Source of the DNA: Podarcis vaucheri
Taxonomy: Eukaryota
Direction: 5' to 3' (one strand)
Length of the DNA: 64,000 nt
Assembly (NCBI GenBank): GCA_965113315.1
Contig: OZ220363.1
Of the stretch, positions 7,802 to 46,271 are shown piece after piece. Each line of letters begins with the position of its first letter. Position 1 is the stretch's first letter. The position numbers and the translations under genes are program-made. The notes under the pieces were generated by a model. It worked only from the letters and a program-made list of their open reading frames with translations, did no database searches and was not told where the DNA came from.

Positions 7802-7810
7802 TGGACAAAG
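7802..7810 (+). CDS. SHANK2: SHANK2 9-nt microexon (VDK)
   Basis: ctctcattAG|TGGACAAAG|GTaagc. Phase 1-1; supplies the VDK of the known Shank2 sequence ELEEL-VDK-ASVRKKK-DK. Confidence 0.9.
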
Positions 7811-12144: not shown

Positions 12145-12165
12145 CTTCAGTACGGAAGAAGAAGG
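12145..12165 (+). CDS. SHANK2: SHANK2 21-nt microexon (ASVRKKK)
   Basis: ctttctattttcaAG|CTTCAGTACGGAAGAAGAAGG|GTaagg. Phase 1-1; encodes ASVRKKK as in Shank2. Confidence 0.92.
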
Positions 12166-21373: not shown

Positions 21374-24300
21374 TGAAATTATTAACATGAAAATGTTTCA
21401 GTTGAGTGAGAGATTTCTTGAGTTTCTTAAGTTTCCTTTGCCTTAATGAGAATTAGCAACACCCACAAAATCAAAAATATTAAATTATCATAAATTTAAA
21501 ATGTCCAAAGAATGTCATGGATACCAGCAGCCACAGCAAAGTAGTTTTAAGTCCTATTGATTTTAGTGGGTGAATTGAGTACATGTTTAAAATTGTGGTC
21601 CTGTGCACAGCTCAAGTAAACTTAGTGGGATTTGCTTCTAAGGAAGCATGCATATGTTTCCTAGTTGAAATCAGTTGGACTTGAAATTCTTAACTTTGGT
21701 TGAAACACACCACATTATTCCTTTATCACACGCCATATGCCCTCTTCTTCCCCCCCCCCCGCCATGCCTTTCTCCCTTTCCCTCCTAAAGCTGTTGAGAG
21801 ACAACTTAACGGTACTTCTTCTGCAGTGTACATGCTCGTGTTTATTGCTTTGCATCTGCAATGTCTGCCAAAAAGAGTGCTTTCAAAAGCCATCGATAGC
21901 TAAATATGCACAGAATTTACAAATGACTTTTTAATGTACATTTATGCTCTAATATTTAGGCAGGTACCTTTTGTAAGTTTTAGCTTCTTTCAAACACATA
22001 TTAGATAACATGGAATAGTTTTCTTTTTAATTGCTCTGAATAAGTAGAAAGCACACTTGAATTGTACTTCGCTTGGGATTTTGCAGTCTTACACTGACAT
22101 GAGACATGTGGTCTAGAACTTGAATGCAGATTCACACAACACCTTTCAGAATATGCATTTTTGCACTACTGTATGGTAGAATTTATACGAAGCTTTTTCA
22201 TTTTGTGAATGGCTCCCAGGCCATGGGATCGGCAACCCCTAAAGATTCAGGTTGTCAGTTGTGTGTCTTTTGGTGGGGAAAATGAACATGTGCTAGAACA
22301 CTTCACAAGTTCTACTTTTATATAGATCTCATAGCATGTGATGTATCGTCCTTTCATTAGTACATTGGGTGGGTATACTGGGAGGAAGAACAACACACAT
22401 GGAAAAATAGTGGTTATGGTTCATTTTCGAAGTTAATAATGTAGCTGAAGCCACAGTATGAAGGTGCAATGGATGTTGCACCCAGTTTGATGTAACCTAT
22501 TGTGCATGGCACAGTTTCTATCTGTATCTGTCTTAGGTATTCAGAAACTTTCATCCTATCTAAAGCAGCTTGAACAGTAAGAAGAAGGGGCATGCTGCAA
22601 ACATGGGCCTAAGTGCAGAGGAACAATTCACGGCTCCAAGAACTTTCTCAAGCGTGCTACTATGGCTGCTGCATTGCTAGCTGTATTTAATTGTACCCAA
22701 AGAACTTTCCAGTTATCTGGCAACAAAGAAGATCATACCTACTCCTGCAATCCAGCTGTTCATATGGGGGGAAAGGAAAGACTATATAAGGAAAAGAAAG
22801 CAATCCAGTAGTGGAGATGAAAAATCTGGTGGGATCTCAAAAGGAAGGACTCTTTGAGAGCAGCACTTCCCAGGGGAGGGATCAGCTGCCAATACAAGTG
22901 GCAGGTAAGACTCAACATGGCCATAAAGAGATAACTATTTTCAGTGAATCAATTGAAATATGTTTCTTATAGCTGAAACCTCTGATTATTATAAGTACTG
23001 TAGCCTGTGCTCTTTCCATATACTTCCTAGAACTAAGTTGTCCTTGGTGTTTCTTCTGTAGCTTTTATATCACGAATAACTTGTAAATGGTATCCTACAT
23101 TCACTGAGAAACTAGAAGCATGATAACCATGTTCAAGGAGCCAGCAGTACGCCAGCACCATGATCCTACCCAAGCATCTATGGAGCTGGTGTAGTCCTGA
23201 CAACATTCTGGCAACATTTGACAAACATCCTGTCCAAGGCAGCTTATACTTCAGGGCAGGGAGTAGGCAAACTACGAATAGTGAACACAAAATTATGAGG
23301 TGTATCATGCACATGGAGGTGTCAGAACAATACACCGAGGTGTATGACACAGATGTACTAAATCACAGAAACGAAGGAGGCATCTGATCACACTGAGGAG
23401 AGGGACTGTGAGAAGTCTAACACTGCCTCTTTGCACACAACACTTTAAAAATTCAGCCAGTTGACAAATAAAATAATGTTATAGGGGAGATACTGAAAAG
23501 AAGCCAAACACACTGGGGTTTTTTGTTTTTAATTCAGAAACAATAACACTATGGAACGAAAAACTAAAAGAGCACCCGGTCCAAAAATTACTAGGCTCTT
23601 GGCACAGTCCTCTTGCTTCCCCTTTCTCCGTCTGTTTTCAAATACATCTTTATAGTTGAGAACTCTGGTAGGCATGCCAGAACAAAATGCAACCAGGTAA
23701 TATTGATTAAACCATAGTATAGGAAGCCACGCATCCACATACCCTATAACTCACTGTATGTCTAGAAAGAAAGCGATTGAGTTAGCAGCGGTTTAAAAAT
23801 ACATTGTTCGGTTAGGTAGATGTAGTATGTAAGGGTGTTGGGGTCTGAAGCAGAGTGCAGACATGAGGGTGCTGATTTCTTAACCATGGTTAAGAGAGTG
23901 GGAGTTGGTCATGCACAGATACCTTGGGTTGGGTACAGGTTTGCGCAGAGCAGAATTGCACAAACTGGCAGGGTCGGCCCACCCATGAGGCAAGGTGAGG
24001 CATCTGACTCAGGCGGCAGGATCCACATGGACAGCAGATCCCAATGCAGATATTTATTCCTCCCCCGTCCTGTTCCTGATGCAGGTTTTCATTCACCCCT
24101 CCTTCCCTGGTGGGGAGGGGGCAGCCATGCAAACTGGATGCTCCCACAAATGGAAGCTGGAACATGATTTTCAATATTTCCTTTCCTCCTGGAGCCTTCT
24201 GTGCTCTCCAGAATCTGCTCCAGAGGATTGGGGGGGATCCTCCGGAACAGCATGGATATGGGTATGGAGGGGGAGAGGGGAACTATCAAAAGTTATCTTC

Positions 24301-27300
24301 CTCCTCTCACCTACGGGAGCCTCTGCAGGAATTGACTTGCTTTTGTGAATAGAAGGAGGCCTTCGATTTGTTGAACAGCAGGTCTGAATCTAACCCTCTC
24401 TTTCCTCTGTCTCCTTTTGTCTCAGGCATTCTTTCTCCTCTCTTTCTCCTTTGAACTTTAATTATATTTATCATTACATCTGCTTTGGTTTATTTGTTCC
24501 TATTTTAAATTCATCTCAGAGTCTTACATTTTGTCTTCAATTGTATTAACATGTTTTTATGTAGTGTCAGCTTATGTGCTGGTTTCCTATAGAAAGTCAA
24601 ATATTTTTGAGAATAATAAATAATCTGCAGTGGTACTAAGCGTGGTTAAAAGCTTGCCTTCACTAAGCATTAATCAGGATTTGAAGCAAGGCTTCAATAA
24701 GCTGGCAAACCCTGTAAAGCTGTTGAGCGTTAATCATGGTTAGTGTTAGCATTACGGTTAGCTCAGTAAATAACTCCTGTGTGATCCCAGTCTCTTAACC
24801 ATGAGTAAAAGATCAACAGTGTTGCATCTGCACTGGGCATAAATAATTGCTTCATTTTCTTTTCATTATTATTATTTCTACATCTCATTGAGCGTAACCT
24901 CAAGCTAGTGATTTGTGCCCCTGTAATGAAACCAAATCTGTAGATGAAAAGTATTTAGAAGATAAATGCATAATATTTATTTAGTTTACATGTTGATCCT
25001 TGCAGTCCAGTTGTTGTATGCTCCTGGTGAAGAACTAGGCAACAATGCAAGATCAAGGCACCTAATTCAAGAGAGACGTTAACTTGATTTTAATATTTCT
25101 AGTCACATGGTGCAGAAGCAGAAGCCAAAGCCATTTGATCATTCAGTCCTGCTGCTGAGCAGCACAGTTTCTAGGCACACCAAATTTCCATTGTCTCCAT
25201 ATTACCAAATGCACTTCTTTCACACCACTAACATAGCACTGGTGCCATCATCTTAACAACTTCCAAGTCCTGAATTTTATCAGGCCAACTTGCAGACAGC
25301 AAGAAAATGACCTTTCAAGCAGAGCCTGATGCATCAACCATTATCCCAAGTTGCCACAGTTGCTCTGCATTGAATGAAAATCAGCTTAAGGTTCTCTGTG
25401 CCCCATAATAATATTAAATAAAGGCTGTAAATCCTAGTTATTAGAGATGCTTGAACTCTTTGTTGTTAATGTTGCCTCTTGATTCAGCCCCTTCATTGTT
25501 AATGGCTAGTCTAACAACCCATCTTAACCTCTTTGAATGTATTCATGATTCATAAGTATTCGACAACAGTGTCAGAATTTAAGTCCATTGATTGTTTATA
25601 AACTGTTTACTCAGTTTGTTATTTGTGTGATTGGCCACACATGCCAATCTCTCTGATTGGAAGGCTGAAGTTATTTGCTTAGGAAGACGTTGCAGTGAAT
25701 AAAATGTTTCTGAGCAATAAGGATTTTTTTTTCAAGTTAGGAAACTGGATTCACCAGTAAATGGCAAATGAACCATCTACATAAATAACAAACTATGCCA
25801 AAATATTATTTTATTTGTATATCAATGTTCACACATCAGCTGGGGGTGGGATAGGTTATATTTTTCAGATTATTTTATCAGGTCTACTATTTTCCATTTG
25901 GTTCTGTTGTAAATGTTCAGACAAAGAGTTTTAAAATATGAAAAATGCCTGGCTTCATATGATCAATGATATCCAATAATAATAATATCCCTTCTTTAGA
26001 ATGGGATGGCCACCTTCTGCATTATAAGCGGCCACTCAGATCTCTAGATTCCATTCCTGGAAGGGGAGTATATTTTGCTGTCCAATTGGACCTTCTCGCA
26101 ACTAGTCAGAAGTTGTATTCAGCATGACCTAGGAAAAGCGGTTTCATAGTTATGGTGCATGTGTGCTGGATCATGATTTGGGCTGTTGCATTCAAAACCT
26201 GGAGATAGAATCATAGATTTGCACAGCTAACAACGTGAAAGGCTTCTCACACAACCTTTAAAAAAAATTTCCTTTTTATATAAAATGTTATTACTGATTG
26301 AAATGTAGCAGGGAGTAAGGCAGATAAAATTATTTCCTGGGCCACATCTTGCTCATGGGCCTCAGCTGGCCATCCCTGCTCTAGAGATTCAGTTAGAATT
26401 TTGAAAAAGACATTTGTTCATGTGGTTAAAAACATCCCTGTTTTATATGTGTACCCTAGCAGAGAATTCTGGAAAGTGGATTTTGTGGTCCTGCACTATC
26501 TATCTAAGGGATATAGGAATCACTAGTTACAGCTGTTGCTGGGCTGGTGGAGCAAAGGTGGGAATTAAAGTGCAAAAGCAGCAGGTATTACATTTAAATT
26601 GTCTCGTGAAGTCCCTTTTCAAAGTATCCATGCAGTGGAAGATCCAAGGCTTGCTTGCCGCTCTGTCTCCACATCCATTTTCATAAGGAACTCATGCATA
26701 TTATATACAAACAGTTTCATTCTCACTTTCCATAAACATGCAACTGGACAGTCTAAACAAACACAAACAGGTGTGAATACTTTGAATGTGAATACGTTAA
26801 TTAATAGATGGAGAAATTATTAGCGCTCACAACGTAATTAATGTTGAGATTAAATATTCAGTTATATTGAATCATGAAATGTACAAGACCCTTTAAATGA
26901 ATCTATGGTTGGAGGGGTTCAGGATTTGGAGTGGTGAGAGAGACCATGGTTTTCTCTAGGAACCACCTCCAACATCCCGCTCCCACTAAAATAAGATGGA
27001 TGATCTCAAAGGATAAGAAATAATAAGAAACATTGTTCCAATCAGACACATACATACATACACCCGTGTCCCTCTGGTGCAAATACACAACTCCAAATTA
27101 AGTTCATAAGAGCAGCATGTGGTGTGTGTCAATGAGCAGGAGTGACACCTAACCAAATACAAATTCATTTGGAGATTCTGCAAAGCAGGTGCAAATTACT
27201 TAGCACCAACCACACAGAGCAACCAGTTCACCAGGAATGATTAGTAGTAGTTACTCTTGTTTACTAGGTAGACTTAGTGAGAATCATGCTGTTCACACAC

Positions 27301-27659: not shown

Positions 27660-28057
27660 AAAAGTACTCAGGCAAGGAGTCAGCAAGGCAAGTGCAAGGG
27701 AAATATTTATCTTCAGACAAACAAAAGGCATCCTGGTGAACAATGCCATTGTGCATAATTGGTTTCAGTTTAATATTAACAAAAAGGAAATGAATGCATA
27801 CAGAAGACCTAAGAGACATTGTTCACAGGATAAATTTGATTGACTGCCACACAGATTTTGTGGCAATAATTCTGGAAGGAGTTTAGGGGTGAGATGAAAC
27901 GCCGGACAAAAGAGAAGATAGCAAGCAGTGCTTCAAAAGTTGCCACACAAGCCAGTGGTGGAGCACATCTGACACCACAGGAAGCTCAGGTCGCTTGGAA
28001 AGTTGACTCCAAGTTCATCACAGAGATTTCTGACTGTGACATCACTACAATGCATAG
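27660..28057 (+). pseudogene. Degraded Harbinger ORF1 Myb/SANT-like exon
   Basis: WKEFRGEMKRRTKEKIA (27873-27923) resembles the W-x-D-M/L-KRR-x-K-x-K helix of Harbinger Myb-like proteins. In-frame TAA at 27867-27869, frameshifts upstream, donor AG|GTGAG after 28057. Confidence 0.7.
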
Positions 28058-28355
28058 GTGAGCTTTTTGCTAGGTTCACAGACATTTACTGTCACAATCA
28101 CAATAAGGTGTATTGAAAGATGTTCTTTGGGATCCAGTACAGTTGTATGTGTTATGGGTGCAGCACCGTGTGCATTTTATGAAGTGCCACTTGCACTTTT
28201 CAGTCTCTAAATTTTAGTCTGCCCAATTATTTGCCCAAACACAAACACTCTGGTTTCCCAACTGGCTTCTTTCTGTGTGTTGTCCGATGTATGTAGATTC
28301 CTCCATCTGCCTGGCCTCAGATACAGTGGTTGTTGCTCCTCTATTTGATTGCCAG

Positions 28356-29212
28356 ATGTCACTGGGCAGCAAGATGGGGAGGTTCCTGGATCTTCTGGAC
28401 AGCCCAGGCACCAGAGAGGAAGTTCACCATCCACACCTGCAGAAGAGCAAGAATCCTCAGTGCCAGCTTCTGATGAAGATTCACCAGCCAGAACTACAGA
28501 GAGTTGGCCATGGCCATTGTCATCATCTGAAACACACAGCAACCTGGGGGAAGATTTTGAGGGATTTCCAACACCAGAGCGGACTCCGCAGTGTACAATG
28601 GACATACAATCTCCTGGGGATCAGTCTCTCAGTAGGACTCCCCAATATGAGAGTGACTCTCCTGTGGAGGGAAATGATGAAATGAACGAAGAGCACCATG
28701 GTGTTCAGCCTGTCCCTAGGGATCGGGGTTGGAGAGGGCAAACTCAGCTGACAGAGGGAGAGAGGTTATTAATGGAAACCAATAGTAGGATTGTACAGCT
28801 GCTGGAAAATATCAAGAGAGAGCATGCACAGTCCATGGGTCTCATGTCACAGTCCATGGGCCGGATGGAGCTGCAGCTAGGCATTGTGGCTACATCCACA
28901 AGAGCCATCCATAACTACCTGTCTGAGATTTTAGCTTTCCTCAAACAACCAAGGACACAGGTCCTTGAAACACGTATCTCCCAAAGAGCCACACCTCATG
29001 TTGAGTTAACGAGTGCCTCAACGTGGACTGGTGAGGATGCAGTGGCAATGCCCACTGGATACTTACCAAGGGATGAAGGGATTAATGACTCTCAAGAAAC
29101 ACTGCAAGCCACACTGCCTCGTCGCAGTGGCCGAATGCAGAGAGCCATAACAGAAAGGGCCTCGTTGCCCATGCCCATGCGCCAAGCAAAGGGGGGAGGG
29201 AAGAAAAAATAA
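28356..29212 (+). CDS. Intact Harbinger-ORF1-derived exon (285 aa: acidic S/P-rich region, amphipathic/coiled-coil helix, basic tail); candidate alternative last exon of SHANK2
   Basis: Open from acceptor ttgattgccAG|AT to TAA at 29210-29212, with an in-frame TGA at 28346-28348 just upstream. Phase 1 matches the SHANK2 donors at 7450, 7810 and 12165. Confidence 0.7.
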
Positions 29213-29619
29213 TTTATCACACTAGTGATAGTATTTTTAAGGGTTTTTTTTAATGTGCCTGTCCTTTTAATTCTTAGCCATAAGGCCATGAGTGGCAGAA
29301 CTTGACCATTTTTACATTTGGCTAACATTGTATTCTGGCTGACTAGATTAGTCTTACATTTTGTAGTTTATATTTGCATTGTTAACAATGTGTGCTACTG
29401 GTATTTGAAGAACATTTGCTTCTGTTCTTTCACTTCAGCTTCATGAGAGCATTTTTTTACACTGTGCCAGACATTCATTGCTTTTCTTACAAATACAAAT
29501 CATTTCTGGACACAGTTGTTTTTTGAGTTTTCTTTTTCCATTATCCCCCCTTCCCCCTTTCCCTCTGAGCAAGCATTCTGGAGTTTTTGGTAAGTATGTG
29601 GGTCTTGGCAATATTCGCC

Positions 29620-30651
29620 TCAGAAATTGTGTTCGATCAGTCTTTGCCTGGTGTTTCTGGCATGCTGGCCTGAGGTGTTGGGATTAGCCTGTAAGTGCCT
29701 TTTTTGATAATAATCTTATCCTCTGTGGGTCTGACCAGATTAATCTCTTGCCTATTTTGTGGAAATTACATATCTTGGCTGGGTTGTGTAATAAGCAACA
29801 TGCCAGGACTATATTGCAGCATTTGTGACTTGTACAAAAACTGTGCCAGCAAACCTATCTAGGCACATGAACTACACTTTCAAAAGCTCCTTCCTTGTTG
29901 AACTGATGGTTTGGCGAGCAACATTGTTAACCCATGGGGAAGTTTGGAGATTTAGAAACAGAGGAAAATAGCAATGCATTTATTATATGTGAATCACATA
30001 AAGAAATATCATAGGAGAAACTATCCCTAATACTATCACAGATACTTACAGATCAAAGCAATCGCCTTCCTTTTAGCCAGACCTTCTCAGAATTTAAGAG
30101 TCATAACACGCTGTTGCGTTCTGTGCCACAATGTCTAAATAACAGCTTTGCATTGCAGACGATATGAAAATCTCTCCTCTTCCTTTAGGCCACCTCATTT
30201 ACTGATGCTAAGAGTGGTCCTAGCACACTATGCAGATAACTATTGCACATGGGTTGGAGAGCATTTTTATTACTGTTGGGACTGCCTCTGTGAGGGTTGG
30301 TTAAAAAGCGAGACACAAAAGCATCTAGATGCATATCAGGAATACAGAGTGGCTTCTGAGTGGTACTCGAGATCATCCTGTTTTCACCACCAAACTGGGT
30401 TGTGTGGTCGCCACCACTGTTACACAGGCACAGTGTAGGCCCTGCTTCACTTTCCAGTTTCACTTTGGAGCTAAATTCCCTAAAGAGCATATTTGTGAGA
30501 GCATATTTATCCAGCCCATATCTAAATCCAAGTTTGTGGCTGTATCTAAACAGGCTGTGGACCATGTGGGCCATCTCTTCCACCTACTCTTGTTTCAGAC
30601 GGAAGAAAACCTGAGAGCAAGAAGCATTTTGCTGCAGTACAAACCAGCCAT
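29620..30651 (-). pseudogene. Degraded PIF/Harbinger (HARBI1-like) DDE transposase
   Basis: Minus-strand fragments in shifting frames: FRYGLDKYAL, THVQ, IVCNAKLLF (30137-30163), YDS*ILRRSG (30076-30105), intron-like donor GTAAGT (30044-30049), LLK..FMCLDRFAG, KCCNIVLACCLLHN (29783-29824) and terminal RQRLIEHNF* (TGA at 29620-29622). Confidence 0.88.
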
Positions 30652-30921
30652 AATATGCTTCTTAGTGAAATATTTGCTTGTGGCTGCTTTTTGCTAAGTG
30701 ACTGGGCTAATGGTGAGATGCAGCTAGTGTGGGCTAACCCCTCATGCAGGCACAACTTACGGTTCAGGTATCTGTCCTGAGGTGAGCTGCCATGGGTGTG
30801 CTGTCTTGACCATAAACTCTAAATGCACCCGGTCTGTCAGGGATGACCTTTCACACCTGCAAACCACTTGTGCCCCATCTGTGCCTGTTTTAGTTCTTGT
30901 TTGTTTGTTAAACATAATATA

Positions 30922-31081
30922 CCGAATTTTTCCGTCTATAAGACACCTCCATGTATAAGACTATTTTGGGGGACTCAGATTTAAGAAAATGGGGGGAGAT
31001 GGCCCCATGTATAAGACGCCCCCTCATTTTTGACATTATTTTTTAGGGGAAAAACCTAGTCTTATACACGGGAAAATATGG
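30922..31081. mobile_element. Tc1/mariner-type MITE (160 bp, TA TSD)
   Basis: TA|ccgaatttttccgtctataagac ... gtcttatacacgggaaaatatgg|TA imperfect TIRs. Confidence 0.8.
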
Positions 31082-31699: not shown

Positions 31700-32250
31700 G
31701 TAGGGCAAGGAGAAATGAGCTGACAATAATAAGATCAACAAAAGATAGAGTTTCCCACTAACCTAATGTGTGGTGGCAATATCAGATTTTGTTAGCGAAT
31801 ACCTGCAAACTGATATTGTAGTCAGATCTAGTGCTTGGATCAGACTTCCAATACTGTCTTGCAAAATAATGGAGGTATGCATGGTTTTTATCATTTTCAA
31901 AGTGAATATCCCCATGCTTTTTTCTTGTATCTGTCAAAGCCTATTCATTATTTCCCTGTAGTTCTCATTGTCTGGCTAGAAATATGGCTACGTGTGTCTT
32001 TTCAGTTACAAATGTTATGAGTTTTTATGTGGAATATTACATTACTTGCAGACATTGAGTAACAAATACTTCCCATCTTCAAAATCTTTCACTGTTGATC
32101 ACAAAAGGTTTGTGGCATCATTTACAGGACTAGAGAGGCATAACACAAAATCTTCCCTCTTGGTGGTGGATATACCAGCAAACCCAAATGTCAAAGATGA
32201 AACCTGTAAGGTTTATGTTTTACTGCAAATTGGAAAGGTTTAGTCATAGT
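31700..32250 (-). pseudogene. Possible very degraded hAT (ZMYM1/Tip100-like) transposase remnant
   Basis: Minus-strand VAIFLARQ*ELQGNNE (~31944-31991) resembles FLARQxLxLRGxxE of DUF4371-type hAT transposases. Boundaries are guessed. Confidence 0.35.
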
Positions 32251-34486
32251 TTGAAAGACAGAATTCAGATTTCTGCTAAATTGAGTATAAATCTATCACA
32301 TTTGAATCTTTTAAAAAGCAGGCCAAAAAAAAAAGAATACTGAAAGATATTGATATTTACAAATAATCTATTGCATTGTCCAGTTCCATGATGTTGGCAG
32401 TAGAGCCTTCTCAGTGACTTAAGAATCTGCTCTTCCATGACAATTTTCTTCACAGGTAGAGAAGTTAACTGTGATTCCTATAAACACCATTGCCCTGATC
32501 CAGCTATCCCTTGTGGGCACAAGGGCTCTGATCTCACCCAACCACAGGATCTTCTCCATTCACTTCAGTGGTCGAGGCATCTCTGGTATCACATGCATAG
32601 AGATATGCACATAGATCTTTTCCATCCACTGCTGTGATTTGAGAAACCCACACATGCAGGGGCTCCTTGTGCACATTGCAGCACACACGGGGCTCTGGTT
32701 CAGGAAGCGTCTCTGCATTTAACAAGATGTGCTACATTAAAAGCCATTTTTCTTTTCCCATATACCATTCTAAACCACACTCTTAAGAGATGAATATGCT
32801 CTACATATCTAATTACAATCTCTAATTTCAACACTCTGCATGGGTGGAATTGTCTGTAGAAAATTATTGAGGTGACTGTATTGAGTTGGTAACTAATGGG
32901 CTAGTTTCTCTTTCTTCCTAAAGCAGTTTGCAATGCAGGTATTTTGTATTTAATTCTAGAAAAATCAGTTGGGAAGTATGATGCCTTTCAGACTTCAGTT
33001 GTCGGACATGATGAAAAAAAGAAATTGGTGGGCAATGGAGTCTCTTCCAGTTGTTACATAACTTTTTATGTATGCATATATGCTGAGTATCCAGGGCCCT
33101 GTGGTTAGGATGAATATTTTGCTAACTTTGCTTTGATAATCTAAATGTTAAAAAAACACCACTGCATATATATAGTCTGACTGCATTCTCTGAACATTGA
33201 TACTGAAGGTGTGGCAAAGAAAGAATATAGGACTATTTTTTATAGTATAAGGTTGGCTCTTATTCCAAGTGTGGAGGATGAATTGATGTGTGATCTTAGA
33301 TCAGTAAAATGACTCAGTTTCAACATAAATACAAAGGGATGATACCCATTGTATAATGCTATAATCCAGTTGTTGCCTAACTCTAGATTTGAACATTCCT
33401 CTTGCATCTTAAAAGGAAATCACTTGTATCGATTGCTTCTATTTTGGTTTGTGTTTGTAATTTGTCTCATTCTGCATTGTGCCGATTGGATCCAAATTTT
33501 CCTGTGCTACAAAGGGTAGAGATAAATTTTGTGTGGTTGGCCTCTATAGCACACTTAAAACTGAGGGCTGATTCTCTTCATAACCTTGTCCGTGACGGGC
33601 TGCTTTTATTTATCCAGCTCAGATTAGTTTTCCTACCTTTTGTCCATAGTGAAGTGGTCATACTATGACTTTGAGATCACAGTTTGATGGCCATCACTCA
33701 AACATACTCTTTGAACATTTGTGGCAAACAGTAACACCATCTGAGTTTGCGGTCAAAATGTTTCATGACTACTTCCTCATAGGCAAATGCAGGAAAATAG
33801 TACTCCAGAGTTTAGAAAGTGGTTTGCTACTAACAACGTGGCCATGAGAATTAGCCCTGAGATATTAATTGCCAGGCTTATAGCAAAGTTTCTAATGAAG
33901 ATTTGAAACTTGACTCATTGGACCTAAGTATGATTCATTTAACATTTAGAAGTCCATAGAAAATTAAGTATTTGCATATTTAAGAGACTTTAAAAAGTGC
34001 TGTTATAACAGTGCCAAATCGTTTTGTCTAATAGCCTGACATCAGGAATAGGTTACAAAGTAATAGCATAAAGAGCACTTAAAAATACCTATTATTGTCT
34101 AAAATTTCATTAGCATTCTAGTGACTACTGTGTGGAATAGTGCTCTGCAGGTGTAAAATTTCTAAAGGTTTTCTTTCCATTTCTATATAGATATTTTCCC
34201 TTCACATTTTGAAGGTTTGAAGAAGAGGATTGTTTTTCGAGTCACACTAAGTAAACATTAAATGCATGCAGGCTTAAAACTAAAGCATGCATGTTACGCA
34301 GCAACAATAAAAGTGCTCGGCTTGCACGACTTACGATGCTGAAGCGTTGCCTTGTTAAATTGCCAAAATCCCCTTTTTATTTGCATCTTTAAAAAAAAGT
34401 TAAACTCTTAATTTCACATTGCATTATTTAGATTTTCAGTCTTTGGACAAATTAGATTTATTTTAGCAAATATTTCTGTGTTACAG

Positions 34487-34617
34487 ATAAAGTTGATGAA
34501 ATAGTACCAGTTTCCAAGCCATCAAGAATTCCAGACAATGCAGCCGTGGACTCAAGAGTGGCAACAATTAAACAACGACCTTCCAGCAGATGCTTTCCCT
34601 CGGCTACAGATATGAAT
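34487..34617 (+). CDS. SHANK2: SHANK2 coding exon
   Basis: ttacAG|AT...AAT|GTgagt. 131 nt; (D)KVDEIVPVSKPSRIPDNAAVDSRVATIKQRPSSRCFPSATDMN contains the Shank motif VATIKQRPSSR. Confidence 0.95.
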
Positions 34618-36861
34618 GTGAGTAATGGCTCTTGTAAATGTACTTAAGAGTTCTGATATTTTGACTAAATTAAGATCTTTCCAGATTCCTAATAGTAGAG
34701 GATAATCCTCCAAGCTTTCCTTTTCTTTTTGCACACTTATCCTTAATTCTTCTGACTTGTGCCCATGATCACCTTCTGGAATGACACTCCTCACTGTAAC
34801 GGATTAAGATTTATTTCCTGGGAAAATTTACTTGGGAGTTAGTCCCATTGAAGTAAATGAGAGGCACCTCTAGAAGTGTGATATATTCATGTTCTATAAA
34901 ATTACACCTTTGTTACACCATATTCTTGAACTGGATCCATAGCAATGGTATATTCAAATGCCCTTTTAATAGCTAATTTCCAGAGTTTGAAATCAACATC
35001 AAAACCTTTCTCATGATTTATTGTAATGGTGCAATGGGACTGTATCTAGATATGAAGTAGATAAAAATATTGAATCAGATCTTGTTCCAGAATCACACAT
35101 AATGAACTTAAAGGTCTTCCTGACCCCAGAGTCGTCCGTGACTGGATCTAACGGTCAGGGATCCCTTTACCTTTTTTACAGTGCAGTATGGTGTGTTTCT
35201 TTTCCTTCCCATCAGAAATGTTGCTCAGACCAAGAAATATGTTCTGTCCAGGATGACAAATTTGCCACCTATTTCACAAATACTATCATTCATAGAATTT
35301 GATATGACTTTAGAAGCTCTTAGTTCAAATACCACAACTAGTGTGGAAGGCTCTGCTTTGTACAAGTTGTGTGCATCCACTACTCTTGATTCCCCACCTA
35401 CTGAGGCAGAAAGAATTAGGGGAGAAACTGACCTGCTGTTAGTTGGATTACTGTGTGTGATGGACAGCATACAGGAAGTAATGACCTCAGCTGGGTGGAA
35501 TAAGAAATATTCTCCTCCTCAGGGAAGACATGCCAAAGAAATATGAAACTTCTGGTTGTCTTGCTCAGCTCTGGCTTTGATACTTCTAGCTAGTCTAAAG
35601 TTTTCCCTTTTTCAGTAAGCTTTTGGGATAGCAGTTTATTTCAATGTATAAAGATACGGTTTCTGAACTGTATCTCCTTCAATCACAGTTTGCAGGACAA
35701 AAGATGGCATTAAATCCCGTGGCTCCTAGTAACACTTCAGGAACTTCTGATTCTGTGCTTTTTAGGTGCTTGAGGCAGATGTTTAGCTTTTCCCAGAAAG
35801 TAAAGTGCCAGAGGACAGAAGCATAATCTCTTGAGAATATTTTTGAAGAATTGAGACTGTCCACCTGTCCACCTCAACTTATCATCCCCAACCCATTGTT
35901 TTTTAAAAAATCTTTTTAATTTTAAATTTCTTTAGAAAAGTTATACCCCAGTCTTCAGCCAAAAAGGCTCCTGGAGTGGCTTGCATACAATCAAGATAGT
36001 CCCTGTCTGTCAGCTTACAACAAAAAAGAAACAGCACAGAAGGAAAAGTGTCCAGGGGGTGAAGGGTGGGGAAACTCAGAGGCCAATTCTTAAAGTTTAA
36101 ATAGTAGTTATTATCATGACAAGGTGGAATGGAATCAGTTTAGGGACAGGCGGTGTCTGATAGAGCTGGCCTTTCAGTAAAGCTATGGAATGAACCCCAC
36201 TTCTTATCTCTCTCACTGTTCATTTGCAAAATAATCATTTTCACTTTTATTCTCTATGCACTACTTATGCCTTATAAAATTATTTATGTTATTCAGTGGT
36301 CTTGTTCCTTCTCGCGTAAAATTCCAGCTGTTTAGCATCTACTTCCTCTAGGAACCTTTTTTTACTTGGGGGGGGGAGTTGGGGAGTGGAGACGGGCTTT
36401 CTTCAGATGTGCTGTATTCTTCTTTCAGGAGGAAAATAGATGCTGATACATGTGCTGCTTTTATTTGTGCGTTTTTTTTTGTTTTTAAAGAAAAGAATTG
36501 AGTCTAGGTTCTGGACTGGAGGACAGTCCCAAATCTATAATTAAAATGAAAAAAAATGTGAATTTTTGAGTAAAGCTCAGTGTGTGTGTGTGTGAGAGAG
36601 AGAGAGAAATGAGGAGACAGGTTGCATTTTAAATTGAAAAGTGCTTGCAAATTCAGGAGTGTGAGCCACTGCAGTGGAAACAAAAGAAACCTCTAGCTGT
36701 GTGCATAGTTTTCTCACATACTTGCACATAAATTTGGTCTTACAAATTGCCTGTTAACTGCTAGTTAGCTGTTGGTGTGCTGCATTCAGCATTTTTCTGA
36801 AGGTATCTGTAGTATTGTATGTGACCATGGCTCATGTTTTGTCCCACTCCAAATAACAATA

Positions 36862-39026: not shown

Positions 39027-39187
39027 NNNNNNNNNNNNNNNNNNNNNNNNNNNNNNNNNNNNNNNNNNNNNNNNNNNNNNNNNNNNNNNNNNNNNNNNNN
39101 NNNNNNNNNNNNNNNNNNNNNNNNNNNNNNNNNNNNNNNNNNNNNNNNNNNNNNNNNNNNNNNNNNNNNNNNNNNNNNNNNNNNNNN
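39027..39187. other. Assembly gap (161 N)
   Basis: Run of N. Confidence 1.
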
Positions 39188-39303
39188 ACAATGAAGACAT
39201 ACTGCCCAAGGTATTGTGTAAACCAGGCCTATATGTGAGAATGAAACAGAACTTTAAATTATGGCTTCAGGTACAATTATTTTTTCTTTTTGTTTTTTTG
39301 TAG

Positions 39304-39415
39304 TCTATGTATGAGAGACAAGGGATTGCTGTGATGCCACCAACAGTCCCTGGGAGTTCCCAAGGCCCGTTTCTGGGTGTACCACGAGGTACCGTGAGAA
39401 GACAAAAATCAATAG
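39304..39415 (+). CDS. SHANK2: SHANK2 coding exon
   Basis: T-rich tract tgtAG|TCT...ATAG|GTaaa. 112 nt; SMYERQGIAVMPPTVPGSSQGPFLGVPRGTVRRQKSI. Confidence 0.95.
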
Positions 39416-39959
39416 GTAAAATGAAACTTTCTACAAGCGACGTTTCATTATTTTCAACAATTGCTTACAGTGTTTGTTTCAAATGCATTTGTTCATGGGT
39501 TGATTTTGAGTCTTGATCAAATAGCCATTGCGTGAGAACAAACTGGCCCGTTCACATGTCATATTGAACCATAAAATAAGCTGTACTTTAATGTGAGAGA
39601 GTAGCATGCAAATGCATGTTTGAGAAATGGCAGGTATTTTGCTCTTCCCCCACTGCTCCTGCTGCTGCCGCATTGCTGTGAAACAAGATGTGGTTTTGCT
39701 TCTCAAGTTCATGGTTTATTTTTATCCAAACAAACCATGAGCAGAAGCCAAGGTTTGTTATTGGCTTACCACTTTGGGGAAAACAAATAATGAGTCCAGG
39801 TTTAGACAACATGACATACATACCAGACCATGGCTTGTTTCGTGGAAGCACAGCATGAGCAGCAGAAGAGCAAAGCATCTCTGCTTTTTAGAAGCATGCA
39901 GCAGCACATTCACATTAAACCATAGCTAAGATATCATGTGACATGTGAACCAGGCCAGT

Positions 39960-40467: not shown

Positions 40468-42150
40468 AGGCCAGTGTCTGTCAATAACATTGGCTGAATA
40501 TTGCAACTGGAATTTGTGCTCTTTGAAATATACAATTTCTTAAGTAATTCATTTTTTTTTAGCTTGTTTATTTCAAATATTTATTTACTGCTTAATATCA
40601 GAATTTCTTAGCATACAAAATGCATTTATAAATCAATAAGTAACAAAGTAACCAACAGCAGACAATCCCTATAAAGTATGGTAAAATCCAAACCAAATTT
40701 AATACACATTTAAATTTTATGTTTATTGAATCAAAAGCATCTACTTTTGCACATTTGAAAATGTTTTAGCATTCTGATTTCCATGTGTAGAATTTTGTTT
40801 ATATCACAATGCCAAATTCATACTACAAAAAGAAGAACAATAATTTTTAAAAAGACTATATTGGTAAAAGTTACTCAGAAGTTAGTTTTAAATGCAATCA
40901 TTCTTCTTTGCTTTATAATTGTGTTTTATAATCTGTGTATATGTGATAAGATGGTATTTTTGTTCAAAATAATTACAGAAAGCTTTAGTAAAATATATAT
41001 TAATTGGTCCATTTTGCTGTAGAAGTATTTGGTTGTACAATGAGGAAGTTAAACAGAGTCAACATATGCTTTATGGAAATGTATTTTTCTGCAAAATGAT
41101 GTTGTTTTAGTCATATTGGAAACTTAGTCAAAGGTCTTATTCCCCACAATTTCAATTGCTATTCTTGCTGTAATAGCAATGGCAAGCAGAGACCAAAAAG
41201 ATACATTTAACACCAAACTTTAATTAGAGCAGGTTGCAATATGGGAGTTAAAGCTGAGAGGCAACGTTTTTCTTGTCCTTTCTTCTCCTTTATGTTTGAA
41301 GGGATATTCTCTTCCCTGGTGAAATAATGAAGTTATTCTTTGCAACTCTCTACATAAAAATAGTTACAGGAAATACAGTGAAAGAAATGTATATTATCAA
41401 CTATTACAAGGAATAGCAATCAGCCCATAGCTTAGATAGACCCTTTTGCTGCTGTTGTTTCATCCTGAACACAAACCAGCAAGCCAGCTATATTAATTAT
41501 TACTTCAGAGACTGTCTGTGTAAGGAGAGCATCTCTTTGCTCTGTCTGTACCAGGAAGTACCACAAGTAGCTTGTGAAGCCATTGCCTCATGCTGTGACC
41601 TGCCCTGGTTAGTGCTTCACGTCTAGCTTTCCAGCATGAAATCTAGCACCTCATACAACAGGTAGCAATCTCACTCCAAAGTTACATATGTTTGTTTGGA
41701 AGGTTGTTTCACAATGCCTCTCAATCCACTCTCTTTACCCATGTAGAAACATTGTTTTATCATGTTTCATGCATGGCCACCTATTCACAAATGCCAACAT
41801 GCATACATTTATTTATTTCTAAGCTTTCCTTTCCTTTCTTCTTCCAGTCTTTCACAGCTTTTGGCTGATAACTTCCTTTTATGCACAGTTCATAAAAAAA
41901 CATTACTTTAGGGATGCACAATTCTCTGTGCACATATGTAAGAAAATGCTGGAAGATCAGCATAGGGACACTGAGGCAAGCCAAAATGTAAACTGAAGAT
42001 CTAGTTGCAGACATCTTCTAAAACCAAACCATGCATAGTAATATATAATACAGTATTTTCTGTACCTGGTTTACTATGTCTTTGGTGACAATGGATGATA
42101 ATTAAAATTCAAGAGCAATTTAAAAATTGTAGCTTGTGATTTTTTTAAAG

Positions 42151-44566
42151 GGATAACAGAGGAAGAACGGCAATTTTTGGCTCCTCCCATGCTAAAATTT
42201 ACCAGAAGTCTATCCATGCCAGACACCTCTGAAGATATCCCTCCTCCTCCACAGTCTTTACCTCCATCACCACCACCTCCATCTCCTTCTCTTTACAACT
42301 CCCCCAAATCTCCAGTGTCTAGAATATATGGGACAATTAAGCCTGCATTTAATCAGAATTCAGGTGCAAAGTTAGCTATTTCAGGTAGATCTGAAAATAT
42401 GGGAACGGTGATAAGGGACAAAGGGATATATTACCGGAGAGAGATGGACCGTTATTCTCTAGATTCTGAGGACTTATATAGCAGAAATGCCTCAACTCAG
42501 GCAAGCTTCAGAAACAAGAGAGGTCAGATGCCGGAGAACCCATACTCTGAAGTTGGAAAAATAGCAAGCAAAGCAGTGTATGTCCCAGCCAAGCCAGCAA
42601 GACGGAAGGGAATGCTAGTGAAACAATCTAATGTTGAGGATAGTCCAGAAAAAACCTGCTCTATTCCAATTCCAACTATCATTGTTAAAGAGCCATCTAC
42701 CAGCAGTAGTGGGAAAAGTAGTCAAGGAAGCAGCATGGAAATTGACCCACAGTCTTCAGAGCAACCAGGACAGCTCAGACCTGAAGATAACTTGACTGTC
42801 AGTAGTCCATTTGCAGCAGCCATTGCAGGGGCAGTGAGGGATAGGGAGAAAAGATTAGAAGCCAGGCGTAACTCTCCAGCTTTCCTTTCCACAGATTTGG
42901 GAGATGAGGATGTTGGGCTATCGCCTCCAATGCCACGTTTGAGACAGTCTAAGTTTAGTGATGAGGGAATGTTTGGTAATGAAGACAACTTTAGGCAACT
43001 TGTATCACCATCTCCTATCCCAGCACCTAGAGAGCCTGAAAATATTTTTAATAGCAGTGAATCAAGTAATCAAAATGATGCAAGGACACCAAACCCTCCA
43101 ACCCCAACATCCATGGGTTCAGAAAATAATGTGTTGGCAACTCAGAATGCTGGTATGTCCAGTTTGGATAACTATGTTCATCCACTCACAGGGAAATTAC
43201 TGGATCCAAATTCACCTTTAGCCCTTGCCCTTTCTGCCAGAGATAGAGCCATGAAGGAACAAACCCAGCAAATTCCAGGGAAAGGAGAATCTGGCAAAGC
43301 AGACCTTAATAAACCCCTTTATATAGATACAAAGATGAGGTCCAACATCGAAACTACATTTCCAGTGACAGCTACAATTGCTAGGCAAAATACGCGTGGT
43401 CCACTAAGGCGGCAGGAGACGGAGAACAAATATGAGACAGATACGGGGAAAGAGAGAAGGCCTGAAGAAAAGAAGAACATGCTGATCAATATTGTGGATA
43501 CCTCACAGCAGAAGTCCGCTGGTTTGCTCATGGTTCATACGGTAGATACAGCGCAGTCCAATGAGACCCCTGATGAAAAGGAAGAGGAAAGTGCTGAGAT
43601 AGATGTGGATACTGAAAAGCCTCCACCAGAGGCGCAGGAAAGTACAGAAACAGCAGAAAGTGGACTAGATGAAGCTGACATGCCTGAGCTACCTGCATCT
43701 CCCTGCAAAACTATTGTAGCAGTTGGCTCCGTTGATGATCCAATCATTTTACCGTTCCGTATCCCTCCACCCCCTTTAGCATCTGTTGACCTTGATGAAG
43801 ATTTCATCTTTACTGAGCCATTACCACCGCCTTTAGAATTTGCTAACAGTTTTGATATCCCAGATGACCATTCTGTCCCAGGCTCTGCACTAACAGACTT
43901 GCTCAAACACAGAAAAAATGGAACTCCGCCTGCTTCATTCAATCCTACTCAACCCTCAAATTCAATAGACAGTAAGAAACCAGTGGGTCTTTCAAACTGT
44001 TTGCCTGCCTCATTTTTACCACCGCCTGAAAATTTTGATAATGTCACTGACTCTGGGATTGAAGAGGTGGACAGTCGAAGCAGTAGTGACCATCACCTAG
44101 AGACAACCAGCACTATCTCAACTGTGTCCAGCATCTCTACCTTATCCTCTGAAGGTGGTGAGAACTTGGATACTTGTACAGTCTATGCAGATGGGCAAAC
44201 ATTTCTGGTGGACAAACCCCCAGTACCTCCTAAGCCAAAAATGAAGCCCATAATCAACAAAAGCAATGCACTTTACAAGGATGCGCTAATTGAAGAAACT
44301 GTAGATAGTTTTGTTATTCCTCCACCTGCCCCACCCCCACCTCCTATCAGCGCACAGCCCGGTATGGCTAAAGTTGTACAGCAAAGGACCTCTAAGCTAT
44401 GGGGTGATGTAACGGAGGTTAAAAGCCCAGTTCTCTCAGGCCCAAAGGCTAATGTCATTAGTGAATTGAACTCAATACTGCAGCAAATGAACAGAGAGAA
44501 ATCATCAAAGCCAGGGGAAGGATTGGAGTCACCTCCAGGAATAAAAACAGCAAGTCTTAGTACAAG
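42151..44566 (+). CDS. SHANK2: SHANK2 large proline-rich exon, with Homer ligand PPLEF at 43827-43841 and cortactin-SH3 ligand KPPVPPKP at 44214-44237
   Basis: ttttaaAG|GGATAACA...ACAAG|GTaaat. 2416 nt, phase 1-2; contains the 797-aa ORF of the track (GITEEERQFLAPPMLKFTRSLSMPDTSEDIPPPP...). Confidence 0.98.
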
Positions 44567-46119
44567 GTAAATGCAACTAAATTATTTTTTAAGTCTATAG
44601 TTTCCGTAAGTTTAAATTGCCTTTGCTTTCATTAATAATGTCTTAAATACCATTTAATCTTATGTTTAAAATGCATGGTATTAATGCTCCAGTGTTAATT
44701 TTTGACCCTCTTAAAAATCTACAAAATACGTTAATTGCTATTATCATTTTTCACCTTTGCCCTTCTTTGTTTATGATATTAACACATATTGAAACATGCT
44801 ATCTTTTACTATGCTGCTAGTTAAGAATCAATTTCACCTCTCCTTTCTAGAATCCCTGGTTATGTGTTTTATGGTTTACCCCTAACTTCTCCACATTTAA
44901 TGAAAAGGTTTCAAAGTGGCTCTAAGTGACAGCTGACTGGTTATAGTTCTGATTTAATTTCAAGTTGATATTGCTTCAGCAGTAGCTATCTTATTTAGAA
45001 TGTGTTGAGTAGTTTTGTGTGTTTTATTTTGCATGATACATATGTTTAGTTTACAATGCAAAGGGCCACATGTGGCGCTGCATGTATTTGCCAAGGTTTT
45101 TCGTCTTCCTGCTGCAATCCATTACAACCTCCAACAAAGCACTCCTGAGAATCCAGTTGGAGGTGGAAGGAAAGAGAGAAATCAGCAGTCCCACATGCAA
45201 ATGTAGAAGTGCTTTCTGCTCACACCTTTGGATCCCAGCCAGAATCTCTCTATGCTTTTTTAGTAAATGAAATAAAAATCTGTCCTTTATTTGATAACAA
45301 ATATTCTAATGCAACTTTAGAAAAAACCAAAAGTGACACATTTAATCTCAAAAATATTTATTTTATTGCATGGGCTTCAGCGCGTGCAGGAAAGGAGAAT
45401 GCACTAATGGACCATATTCTGGTTTCATTTTTTAAAATCAAGTTTCCTGCTGGATCATACCAGCTGCTCATTTGGTCTAGCATCTTGTTCTCACACTGTG
45501 CACATTCAGTTACTCCAGTAAAGCGATCAAGGTACATTAATGATTTGTTGTTTGAGCTGTTTGGTTTTAATTGTTGGAAGAAGAGTAGTCACAAAGCCTG
45601 TCCTTTAGTCTTTTCTAGGGTGGCCAGAGACAAAGGATACAAGGGCTTTTGCACCTCTCTCAATTGTGGAATTTTGTTGTGTGCATCTTATCATGCAGGG
45701 GTGAAAGCAGCTGCACTTTCAAAAAAATCATTTTCTACACAGCTATTAAAAATGTGAGAGGTCTGTCATCCTCTCCTCTTCATCAGAGCATACAACTGCC
45801 ATGGTCAATAATACATTACTTTTTAAAAACTTTTTTTTAAAAAACATGTTCTCCATGGTGGTAGTATATGGTGGCAGGGTCAGCTTTGTCATCCCATCTT
45901 CAACCACCCTGCCTTACAGCCAGTACCACTGAAAGATTGCATTTGTCAGACATATTTTTAAAGTCAATATTGTGAAATTTATTGAGCCTTTGGGTGGATT
46001 TGTTGCACTTGCTATGATAGGTTCTAGGACTTTCAACTGAAGGTAGTGACCCATGGTAGCGGAACAGTAGAGTGATGTAAGAAACCCCAAACTCTGAATG
46101 TACCATTTTTTACCTGTTG

Positions 46120-46162
46120 TTGAGCCTGGCTTTGGCCGGGGAGGGCAAGATACAAAAAAAAA

Positions 46163-46206
<44 letters not shown>
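46120..46206 (+). mobile_element. L2 3'-terminal fragment with (TTA)n tail
   Basis: tgagcctggctttggccggggagggc matches the 3' stem-loop at 21272-21298 and is followed by (TTA)n. Confidence 0.7.
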
Positions 46207-46209
<3 letters not shown>

Positions 46210-46271
46210 GGACCTGTTTCCTAGCAAAGTTTAAGCTTCAGCTACATGGGGACAGGTTTTATGTGGTAGAG

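Follow-up and report, generated by a model that had tools for sequence, protein, structure and literature searches.

Among postsynaptic scaffolds, SHANK2 is a core member, and its gene is linked to neurodevelopmental disease. In mammals, translation of a short isoform, AF141901, begins from the ProSAP1 start codon; its product retains the PDZ domain but terminates ahead of the proline-rich region and the SAM domain (PMC3276563). It ends via an alternative 3′ end in "exon 22b," which, judging from the exon order, we place 3′ of the intron considered here, and neither a separate conserved module nor a nested gene is described there (PMC3276563). A second kind of precedent comes from the Harbinger-derived NAIF1, MSANTD family, and TSNARE1, the last of which is a fusion of a Harbinger Myb-like part with a host gene (PMC9392472). 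The notion that part of a transposon protein becomes fused to a host gene or is captured by one is common to these cases and to the initial annotation of the present locus. They retain a recognizable Myb/SANT-like domain, whereas for the exon described below neither a domain of this kind, nor a transposase, nor similarity to their sequences was found.

Orthologues include gene models from birds, turtles, and crocodiles labeled "uncharacterized protein LOC..." (Harpia LOC128152587, Struthio XP_009686704, Caretta LOC142072520), which are 88 to 91% identical over the whole exon and share its core unchanged. These models likewise consist of two exons, the first of them short and joined to the second in phase 1 (...QVA/DVTG), and the location in a SHANK2 intron is shown in one bird contig. 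The entries carry neither name, domain, nor publication. A literature search on SHANK2 with Harbinger or transposase, on chicken SHANK2 isoforms, and on the LOC identifiers found no description of the exon. The statement in the initial annotation, which was made from the letters alone, that this is not a described gene is therefore half right: no paper was found, but the exon has been annotated many times, both as uncharacterized LOC and as SHANK2 isoform models.

Here, we analyze a window of 64,000 nucleotides from the lizard Podarcis vaucheri (contig OZ220363.1 of assembly GCA_965113315.1), the exons of which were analyzed singly.

RESULTS

An open coding exon with a phase-1 acceptor inside a SHANK2 intron

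The part of the window discussed first contains these exons:

7370 to 7450, + strand: SHANK2 exon ending SELEEL, with a phase-1 donor (G/gt) that is the donor in the chicken and turkey fusion models
7802 to 7810, + strand: 9-nt SHANK2 micro-exon VDK, with a phase-1 donor (G/gt)
12145 to 12165, + strand: 21-nt SHANK2 exon ASVRKKK, with a phase-1 donor (G/gt) that is the donor in the crocodile model
28356 to 29212, + strand: main coding exon, 285 codons plus TAA, with phase-1 entry and an open frame
34487 to 34617, + strand: next constitutive SHANK2 exon (DKVDE...), the normal partner of the 7450, 7810, and 12165 donors

The main exon has the same orientation as SHANK2 and is located in the intron that separates the ASVRKKK micro-exon from the DKVDE exon. 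The last base of its acceptor, ...ttgattgccAG, is 28355, which places the exon start at 28356. A TGA at 28346 to 28348 closes the frame on the 5′ side, and from there the frame is open to the in-frame stop, a TAA at 29210 to 29212 (287 codons when counted from 28349 and 285 when counted from the acceptor). An ATG first occurs at codon 84 (MDIQ...). Both alternative frames carry 6 to 20 stops, in lizard and bird alike, and the frame is also open in the bird at the syntenic site. The initial annotation had claimed this open frame with its TGA, phase-1 acceptor, and ATG at codon 84, and each element was found again on rereading the sequence. Its view that this is a spliced exon rather than a stand-alone gene is likewise supported: translation can only follow splicing into the phase-1 acceptor.

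The acceptor phase fits the upstream SHANK2 donors. As had been claimed, those at 7450, 7810, and 12165 are all phase 1 and end in G, and G/AT gives Asp exactly as at 34487, where the normal next exon begins with AT. An origin of the exon by internal duplication of SHANK2 coding sequence was considered and rejected, as there is no similarity to the large SHANK2 exon.

The frame is under purifying selection

For dN/dS and synteny, bird DNA was taken from one metagenome contig. The order of conserved blocks in this contig, including the flanking SHANK2 exons, is the same as in the lizard, and the block at 34133 to 34632 is 88% identical. Between lizard and bird, the exon has a dN of 0.056 and a dS of 0.53, giving a dN/dS of 0.105 (Fisher p = 6e-28), with 17, 17, and 77 mismatches at the three codon positions. 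Over the 80 codons before the first Met, dN/dS is 0.059 (Fisher p = 1.6e-15), and therefore translation must start in an upstream exon. The C-terminal third has a dN/dS of 0.42, and dS is low, 0.39, in the 3′ two-thirds. For the same species pair, dN of the large SHANK2 exon is 0.084; the 28356 exon is more constrained than the SHANK2 proline-rich exon.

We considered that the frame might be open by chance, or that the region might be a purely noncoding conserved element. Conservation of the flanking intron and 3′ stretch equals or exceeds that of the frame, and the dS in the 3′ two-thirds of the exon would fit a noncoding element. The codon-position bias and dN/dS argue against this, as do the stops in the other two frames of both species. 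A chance frame would have to account for 287 stop-free codons, compared with a maximum of 193 and a mean of 124 in 200 shuffles of the 22-kb SHANK2 intron. The tests of selection and frame length refute both versions, to which we give virtually no weight. The segment at 28356 to 29212 is a real protein-coding exon under selection, and the earlier claim that selection keeps its frame open is borne out.

Orthologues, proposed in the initial annotation as a check, were found in squamates, sea turtles, Crocodylus, and more than 50 birds, one per species and 88 to 96% identical, and in a bird the exon is on the same strand in the same SHANK2 intron. A core of about 100 residues shows little or no variation among 27 sauropsid sequences. 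When the exon profile was compared with 1.84 billion representative proteins, no real homologue was found outside its own, sauropsid-only cluster; the single extra match, P0039, is spurious, being a translated tandem repeat. A second search via the chicken fusion, which reached proteins of 252 to 801 aa, added zero new clusters. On these sequences, the coding unit is single copy and conserved in sauropsids.

A dedicated first exon at 22817 to 22904

Upstream of the main exon, in the same intron, is a second coding segment:

22817 to 22904, + strand: first coding exon of the nested gene, with an ATG at 22817, 29 codons plus 1 base, and a phase-1 donor (G/gtaag)

A tblastn search of the window with bird proteins P0003 and P0006 matched 22826 to 22912 with 72% identity (E = 7e-8), and the DNA block at 22772 to 22927 is 79% identical to positions 5506 to 5660 of bird contig L001. 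The segment corresponds to exon 1 of the bird "uncharacterized protein LOC..." models, which are 312 to 313 aa long, and across birds, from ostrich to crow and penguin, the peptide of this exon is unchanged. The lizard exon begins three codons before that of birds, at a different ATG; an ATG and the phase-1 G donor are kept in both lineages. One extra C in the bird contig would break the frame of this exon and is probably a homopolymer error, because the bird protein models read through it. A TATATAA sequence lies about 30 nt 5′ of the exon (22784 to 22790), and its letters are not fully kept in the bird.

The main exon is thus accompanied by a first exon of its own, whose start codon and compatible donor are conserved between lineages, and the frame of the main exon is under purifying selection (dN/dS 0.105, and 0.059 before the Met), both of which are marks of a nested gene. 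Since this first exon is conserved, and invariant within birds, the stand-alone models do not look like a mere modeling artifact. The initial annotation had overlooked it, and by its own standard, under which splicing from a non-SHANK2 first exon would indicate an independent nested gene, this exon points to such a gene. That annotation had read 28356 to 29212 as essentially an alternative last exon of SHANK2, so that stand-alone models would be 5′-incomplete fragments. The phase-1 G donors at 7450, 7810, and 12165 are in keeping with this, as are the fusion models in chicken, turkey, and crocodile and the shared strand and intron in a bird. However, it leaves unexplained a separate first exon whose ATG and phase-1 G donor are conserved from lizard to birds, with no variation within birds, and we regard it as very improbable.

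SHANK2 fusions exist as public gene models

Splice junctions into 28356 were taken from automatic public gene models. Stand-alone "uncharacterized protein LOC..." models (312 to 313 aa, in more than 50 birds) are the majority annotation. Of the three SHANK2 junctions predicted by the initial annotation, two are present in models of other species. Chicken A0A8V0ZZV9 (458 aa) and turkey A0A803YIF5 join SHANK2 to the exon at SELEEL/DVTG, the 7450 type, and Crocodylus XP_019407090 joins it at ASVRKKK/DVTG, the 12165 type. Varanus KAF7252051 is also a model of a SHANK2/exon fusion, and the 7810-type junction is absent from the public fusion models. The chicken fusion has the full N terminus, a complete PDZ domain, and an uninterrupted frame. 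These models come from Ensembl-derived UniProt entries (chicken, turkey), NCBI (crocodile), and a third-party annotation (Komodo). Some models are imperfect: the Komodo model reads through an intron, the crocodile model starts within an intron, and a Pelecanus model has another first exon. Models starting at Met84 exist in turtles and songbirds.

It may be argued that only an independent nested gene exists, and that the fusion models are read-through or chimeric-assembly artifacts of overlapping transcripts on the same strand. The flaws in several fusion models are compatible with this, and the Met84-start models of turtles and songbirds imply that transcripts exist with 5′ ends other than those of SHANK2. 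A first exon with its own ATG, conserved in the lizard window, and the predominance of stand-alone annotations with an invariant first-exon peptide point in the same direction. Yet fusions were modeled independently in three pipelines, with exon borders joined exactly, at two distinct SHANK2 donors; the chicken model is complete through the PDZ domain in an unbroken frame; and three SHANK2 donors all have the required phase and base. On balance, a nested gene alone seems rather unlikely.

The exon encodes an acidic region, a long helix, and a basic tail

The exon product consists of three recognizable parts:

28356 to 28753, + strand: acidic, disordered region rich in Ser, Pro, Thr, and Glu (pLDDT below 50), which includes the 80 pre-Met codons
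28754 to 28942, + strand: single long amphipathic helix of 63 residues (AlphaFold2 residues 134 to 196, block pLDDT 75 to 96)
29113 to 29209, + strand: basic C-terminal tail with a net charge of +9 over 32 residues and a Gly-Lys run at its end

The acidic region has a net charge of -18 over 124 residues, and the whole exon product contains nine SP/TP motifs. AlphaFold2 gave a mean pLDDT of 54.7 and was confident for one helix only. This helix has an unbroken heptad register, with Gly at i, i+7, and i+14; in one register, 13 of the 18 a/d positions are hydrophobic, which was equaled by 97 of 20,000 shuffles. In its length and continuous heptad pattern, it agrees with a coiled coil, and it lies within the invariant or nearly invariant core of about 100 residues. 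The tail residues are mostly invariant, and the linker before the tail is the least constrained part. The order claimed initially, an acidic SP/TP region followed by a heptad helix of about 60 aa and a basic tail, therefore holds, and the helix that had been placed at 28760 to 28948 is the one modeled by AlphaFold2. A Pfam match of the exon to BCDHK_Adom3 is at chance level (E = 0.04 to 0.07), and a sequence search of the PDB with the family profile and two downstream ORFs returned nothing.

Noncoding DNA around the exon is highly conserved

Comparison with the bird delimited three further segments:

27886 to 28239, + strand: conserved noncoding stretch that includes the "Myb exon" of the initial annotation (27894 to 28057) and a conserved AG/GTGAGC donor
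28240 to 28355, + strand: acceptor-proximal intron with a pyrimidine tract and the AG acceptor, nearly invariant between lizard and bird
29213 to 29740, + strand: highly conserved 3′ untranslated stretch

The first segment is 56 to 80% identical to bird DNA, with indels of 7, 5, and 2 nt. In the bird, GTG replaces the ATG of the "Myb exon" and the frame is not kept, and Pfam found no match in the region or in its bird counterpart. The segment may be a noncoding alternative 5′ exon or a regulatory region. The claim that in the MKRRTKEK frame the 28057 donor is phase 2 was correct on rereading; the in-frame TAA reported for that exon was not found between the ATG at 27894 and the donor.

Identity with the bird is 90% at 28240 to 28299 and 100% at 28300 to 28359, which exceeds that of coding sequence. 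On the 3′ side, it is 83 to 97% at 29260 to 29499 and falls below 60% beyond about 29740; a conserved donor-like GGTAAGTAT lies within this stretch, near 29588. A scan for AATAAA and ATTAAA found none in 29213 to 29740 and none before 31102, and the "terminal" status of the exon is therefore based on its stop codon. Predicted RNA folding is unremarkable for both the acceptor-proximal intron (z = -1.3) and the conserved 3′ block (z = -1.0), and an Rfam scan of the whole window found zero known RNA families. In a translated comparison with the bird contig, stop-free segments of the + strand flanks matched only in the conserved intron and untranslated blocks. These matches are not coding, because several frames matched and stops are present.

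A Harbinger origin is unsupported

The initial annotation placed the exon inside a fossil Harbinger element with a flanking transposase and Myb exon, and this was reproduced by no tool. A Pfam scan of 237 stop-free segments of at least 35 codons, from both strands of 16.5 to 33.5 kb, found no match to DDE_Tnp_4, Plant_tran, Myb, or MADF at E ≤ 1. As a positive control, a decayed ORF at 52.1 kb was recognized by the same scan as reverse transcriptase (RVT_1, E = 2e-7). No Myb/SANT-like domain (trihelix, MADF, Myb_DNA-bind) was found by Pfam in the exon, in 27894 to 28058, in the flank segments, or in the bird counterpart, and the bird flanks gave no match to DDE_Tnp_4 or Myb. The ORF at 30329 to 30694 was rejected as a transposase, as it has no relatives, no PDB match, and no bird counterpart. 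The surrounding 30150 to 30700 can, in our judgment, be lined up by eye with Harbinger transposase motifs; this alignment failed every tool test.

Independently of how the exon is used, it could have originated as the C-terminal exon of a Harbinger Myb-like gene that was domesticated in the sauropsid stem, the Myb exon and transposase having since decayed. A sauropsid-only family without relatives fits such a lineage-specific birth, and an acidic region followed by a long helix is, as we see it, loosely reminiscent of how Harbinger Myb-like proteins such as NAIF1 are built in their C-terminal halves. Against this, the flank segments and bird flanks contain no transposase or Myb match, although RVT_1 was found at 52.1 kb, and the exon profile matches only its own cluster and a tandem-repeat artifact. 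Furthermore, ORF 30329 to 30694 is without relatives or a bird counterpart, the "Myb exon" keeps neither frame nor ATG in the bird, and the exon is missing from a survey of vertebrate Harbinger Myb-like domestications (PMC9392472). Harbinger derivation is thus unsupported, and we consider it improbable.

DISCUSSION

The observed exon, with its selection, synteny, splice phase, and dedicated first exon, likely serves two upstream exon classes, being both the body of a nested gene and an alternative last exon of a short SHANK2 isoform. Either class would provide a start codon and complete the Asp codon with its first base. By the first route, 22817 to 22904 would be joined to 28356 to 29212 to encode an independent protein of about 314 aa, orthologous to the bird LOC models. 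By the second, the SHANK2 donors at 7450, 12165, and possibly 7810 would be spliced to 28356. The resulting short SHANK2 isoform would keep the PDZ domain, with the exon-encoded tail in place of the SAM domain and the proline-rich Homer/cortactin region. The acidic disordered region is probably phosphorylated, and the helix may be a module for oligomerization or partner docking. Placed on the PDZ domain, it could couple PDZ ligands to another set of partners without SAM-driven sheet assembly, and the free protein might bind the same partners with SHANK2 absent.

More tentatively, this may be a sauropsid orphan exon that has been kept for about 300 million years, by our own dating, serving both the nested gene and a genuine alternative SHANK2 C terminus. 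In that case, it was either born in the sauropsid stem, de novo or from an unrecognizable mobile element, or lost in mammals.

The fusion is already in the databases as gene models, and a paper describing it was not found. Reptiles and birds have a 285-residue module in a SHANK2 intron, whereas the known mammalian short isoform just stops early. If the fusion is real, birds and reptiles would have a form of SHANK2 with a different assembly logic, lacking in mammals. If it is not, the locus still holds a cleanly delimited, lineage-restricted orphan gene under strong selection in a well-studied locus. In either case, its splice-site and 3′ untranslated flanks are unusually conserved.

A long open exon in a SHANK2 intron

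The 3′ half of SHANK2 is present in the window, on the same strand as the exon under study. Reading the sequence directly, we found 287 codons without a stop at 28349-29209 (+), and codon 84 is the earliest methionine of this frame (Met84). The initial annotation had described a long open frame behind an acceptor, with three upstream SHANK2 donors of matching phase, and its reading of these sites was accurate. The landmarks of the locus are:

~4051-4194, +, last PDZ exon of SHANK2
7450, +, SHANK2 donor, exon ending …SELEEL, phase 1, G before gt
7810, +, SHANK2 donor, 9-nt micro-exon VDK, phase 1, G before gt
12165, +, SHANK2 donor, 21-nt exon ASVRKKK, phase 1, G before gt
22817-22904, +, dedicated first exon, ATG at 22817, 29 codons, G/gtaag after 22904, phase 1 with G
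28346-28348, +, TGA closing the frame upstream
28355, +, end of acceptor AG; exon from 28356
29210-29212, +, TAA, stop codon of the exon
34487, +, start of the usual next SHANK2 exon, with AT
~42134-44570, +, large proline-rich SHANK2 exon
~59018-59638, +, SAM exon of SHANK2 (SAM_1, E 3e-22)

Since the longest stop-free run in 200 shuffles of the 22-kb intron was 193 codons (mean maximum, 124), a frame of 287 codons is not expected by chance.

The exon is conserved in sauropsids and syntenic in a bird

We searched 5.8 billion proteins by word index and obtained five clusters with 88-100% identity to the exon and no others; absence outside sauropsids is judged from protein collections. Orthologue models include an "uncharacterized protein LOC…" (312-313 aa) present in over 50 birds ranging from ostrich to passerines, models of 204-206 aa starting at Met84 in sea turtles and songbirds, a Crocodylus model, raw-assembly ORFs (95-96% identity) and a Varanus model (96%, tblastn). 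In an alignment of 27 sequences, a run of about 100 residues around the predicted helix (below) is invariant or nearly so. The product has no relatives in Pfam, PDB or a representative library of 1.84 billion proteins.

One scan of metagenome contigs yielded L001, 20.8 kb of host DNA inferred to be neoavian; its ORF shares 99% identity with a penguin model. It is collinear with the window in the order first-exon block, two small blocks, a 2-kb block (27886-29925, 82% identity), two small blocks, the 34487 exon, 39282-39423 and the large SHANK2 exon. A bird therefore carries the exon in the same SHANK2 intron, the synteny that the initial annotation had proposed to check. The four small blocks (25512-25565, 26610-26798, 30675-30751 and 31784-32047; 67-84% identity) are probably non-coding conserved elements, because their matches fall in several frames with stops. 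Block 39282-39423, just 3′ of a run of N at ~39030-39200, is probably a SHANK2 exon. The ~350 nt of intron before the 34487 exon (34133-34486) match the bird at ~88% identity, a further case in this gene of strong conservation next to a splice site.

Selection acts on the whole exon, which must be spliced

We estimated selection by Nei-Gojobori counting in a single pairwise comparison, window versus L001. Differences fall 17/17/77 by codon position, and the whole exon has dN 0.056, dS 0.53 and dN/dS 0.105 (Fisher p 6e-28), as expected if selection keeps it open. In the large SHANK2 exon, the same species pair gives dN 0.084, dS 1.07 and dN/dS 0.079. By dN, constraint on the exon protein thus equals or exceeds that on SHANK2's own sequence. 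For the 80 codons between acceptor and Met84, dN/dS is 0.059 (dS 1.02, p 1.6e-15), so they must be translated. From Met84 on (28600-29209), dS is only 0.39, versus 1.02 in those codons and 1.07 in the large SHANK2 exon, a hint of extra RNA- or DNA-level constraint.

No start codon within the exon can reach the pre-Met84 codons, and the TGA seven bases upstream is kept in the bird. The exon must therefore be entered by splicing, as first proposed, and is not a stand-alone gene. Between lizard and bird, the acceptor and last 60 nt of the intron are 100% identical and the preceding 60 nt 90%, both above coding-sequence identity. Conservation of this kind is the hallmark of tight splice-site control. 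On the other side, 29260-29499 shows 83-97% identity, above most coding sequence. The region 3′ of the stop codon (29213-29740) contains a conserved donor-like site, GGTAAGTAT, near 29588, no canonical poly(A) signal and no Rfam match; its folding is unremarkable.

Two sets of upstream exons may feed the exon

For transcript structure we relied on others' gene models. Searching with bird proteins (tblastn), we found that their 26-residue first exon matches window 22826-22912 (72% identity, E 7e-8). This dedicated first exon was overlooked by the initial annotation. Its phase 1 donor, ending in G, is exactly what the acceptor requires, and TATATAA lies ~30 nt 5′ of this first exon. The DNA block is 79% identical between window and bird, and the peptide is identical across birds; the in-frame ATGs of lizard and bird differ in position by a few codons. 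L001 carries an additional C within a run of C close to the first-exon end (5620-5640), which would put it out of frame with every bird protein model. A homopolymer error in the metagenome assembly is the probable cause, though the base could be a real variant.

SHANK2 donors fit equally in phase, and fusion models are already public. The 7450-type junction (…SELEEL to DVTG…) occurs in chicken A0A8V0ZZV9 (458 aa, complete PDZ at residues 41-129) and turkey A0A803YIF5, and the 12165-type (…ASVRKKK to DVTG…) in Crocodylus XP_019407090. A Varanus model named SHANK2 includes the exon after some read-through sequence. The Met84-start models and a Pelecanus model, whose first exon is different again and lies just upstream, suggest that there are more 5′ variants, with non-coding 5′ exons.

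A transposon origin is unlikely

The initial annotation derived the exon from a Harbinger element. From 16.5 to 33.5 kb, every stop-free segment of 35-38 codons or more, on either strand, was compared with Pfam (237 segments, E≤1). None matched DDE_Tnp_4, Plant_tran, Myb or MADF, and the lowest E-values, 0.004-0.005, are chance level for 120 queries. The method can see fossils, because it detected the remains of a retroelement in a SHANK2 intron further downstream (ORF 52103-52438; RVT_1 at 52103-52435, E 2e-7). The supposed Myb exon (27894-28057) is 67-75% identical to bird DNA. Indels of 7, 5 and 2 nt, GTG for ATG and a middle portion in a different reading frame rule it out as a conserved coding exon. 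Given its conserved AG/GTGAGC donor, the stretch may serve as a non-coding 5′ exon or have a regulatory role. For the most transposase-like ORF (30329-30694), searches gave no relatives in the protein collection and no match in PDB, and L001 has no counterpart. By eye, 30150-30700 can be aligned with Harbinger transposase motifs, and the product's acidic-then-helix layout recalls NAIF1; each is a lead, not evidence. We regard a transposon origin as improbable. The 2022 survey of vertebrate Harbinger Myb-like domestications does not include this locus (PMC9392472). The exon and SHANK2's own large exon are unrelated.

Repeats occur elsewhere in the window. At 30900-31070, ...tataagac... motifs recur with partial inverted symmetry; not conserved in the bird, they look like a lineage-specific short interspersed repeat. 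A G+C-rich tandem repeat at 54416-54793 (60-nt unit, ~4.8 copies, 93% matches) creates spurious open frames of up to 297 stop-free codons on both strands, and a microsatellite at 46098-46457 translates to an Ile run within a spurious ORF.

Predicted product and relation to known SHANK2 isoforms

The predicted order of acidic SP/TP region, ~60-aa heptad helix and basic tail held. Ser, Pro, Thr and Glu abound in the acidic N-terminal 124 residues (net -18), which are still strongly constrained; the whole product carries nine SP/TP motifs, and the C-terminal 32 residues are basic (net +9). AlphaFold2, run on the 27-sequence alignment, gave one confident element, an uninterrupted helix spanning exon residues 134-196 (28754-28942; block pLDDT 75-96), inside the near-invariant stretch. 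The rest is predicted disordered (mean pLDDT 54.7). The heptad register is unbroken: of its 18 a/d positions, 13 are hydrophobic, a score that 97 of 20,000 shuffles reached. Gly recurs at three positions spaced exactly seven residues apart.

Gene-model pipelines have already annotated the exon; we found no publication on it or its models. The mammalian short isoform AF141901 begins at the ProSAP1 start and, using an alternative 3′ end within exon 22b, stops short of SAM (PMC3276563). By our reading of exon order, that end lies at a different, more downstream place, and that paper describes no conserved added module. PDZ-terminated SHANK2 isoforms are therefore already known, and the predicted sauropsid version is a new form of them, which shares its body with a nested gene. 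Of the initial interpretation, then, the exon, its selection and its SHANK2 compatibility are borne out, with fusion models on record, and the Harbinger origin lacks support. The helix would act as an oligomerisation or docking module. On a PDZ-only SHANK2, it would stand in for SAM-driven assembly and Homer/cortactin binding, and the free protein would bind the same partners without SHANK2.
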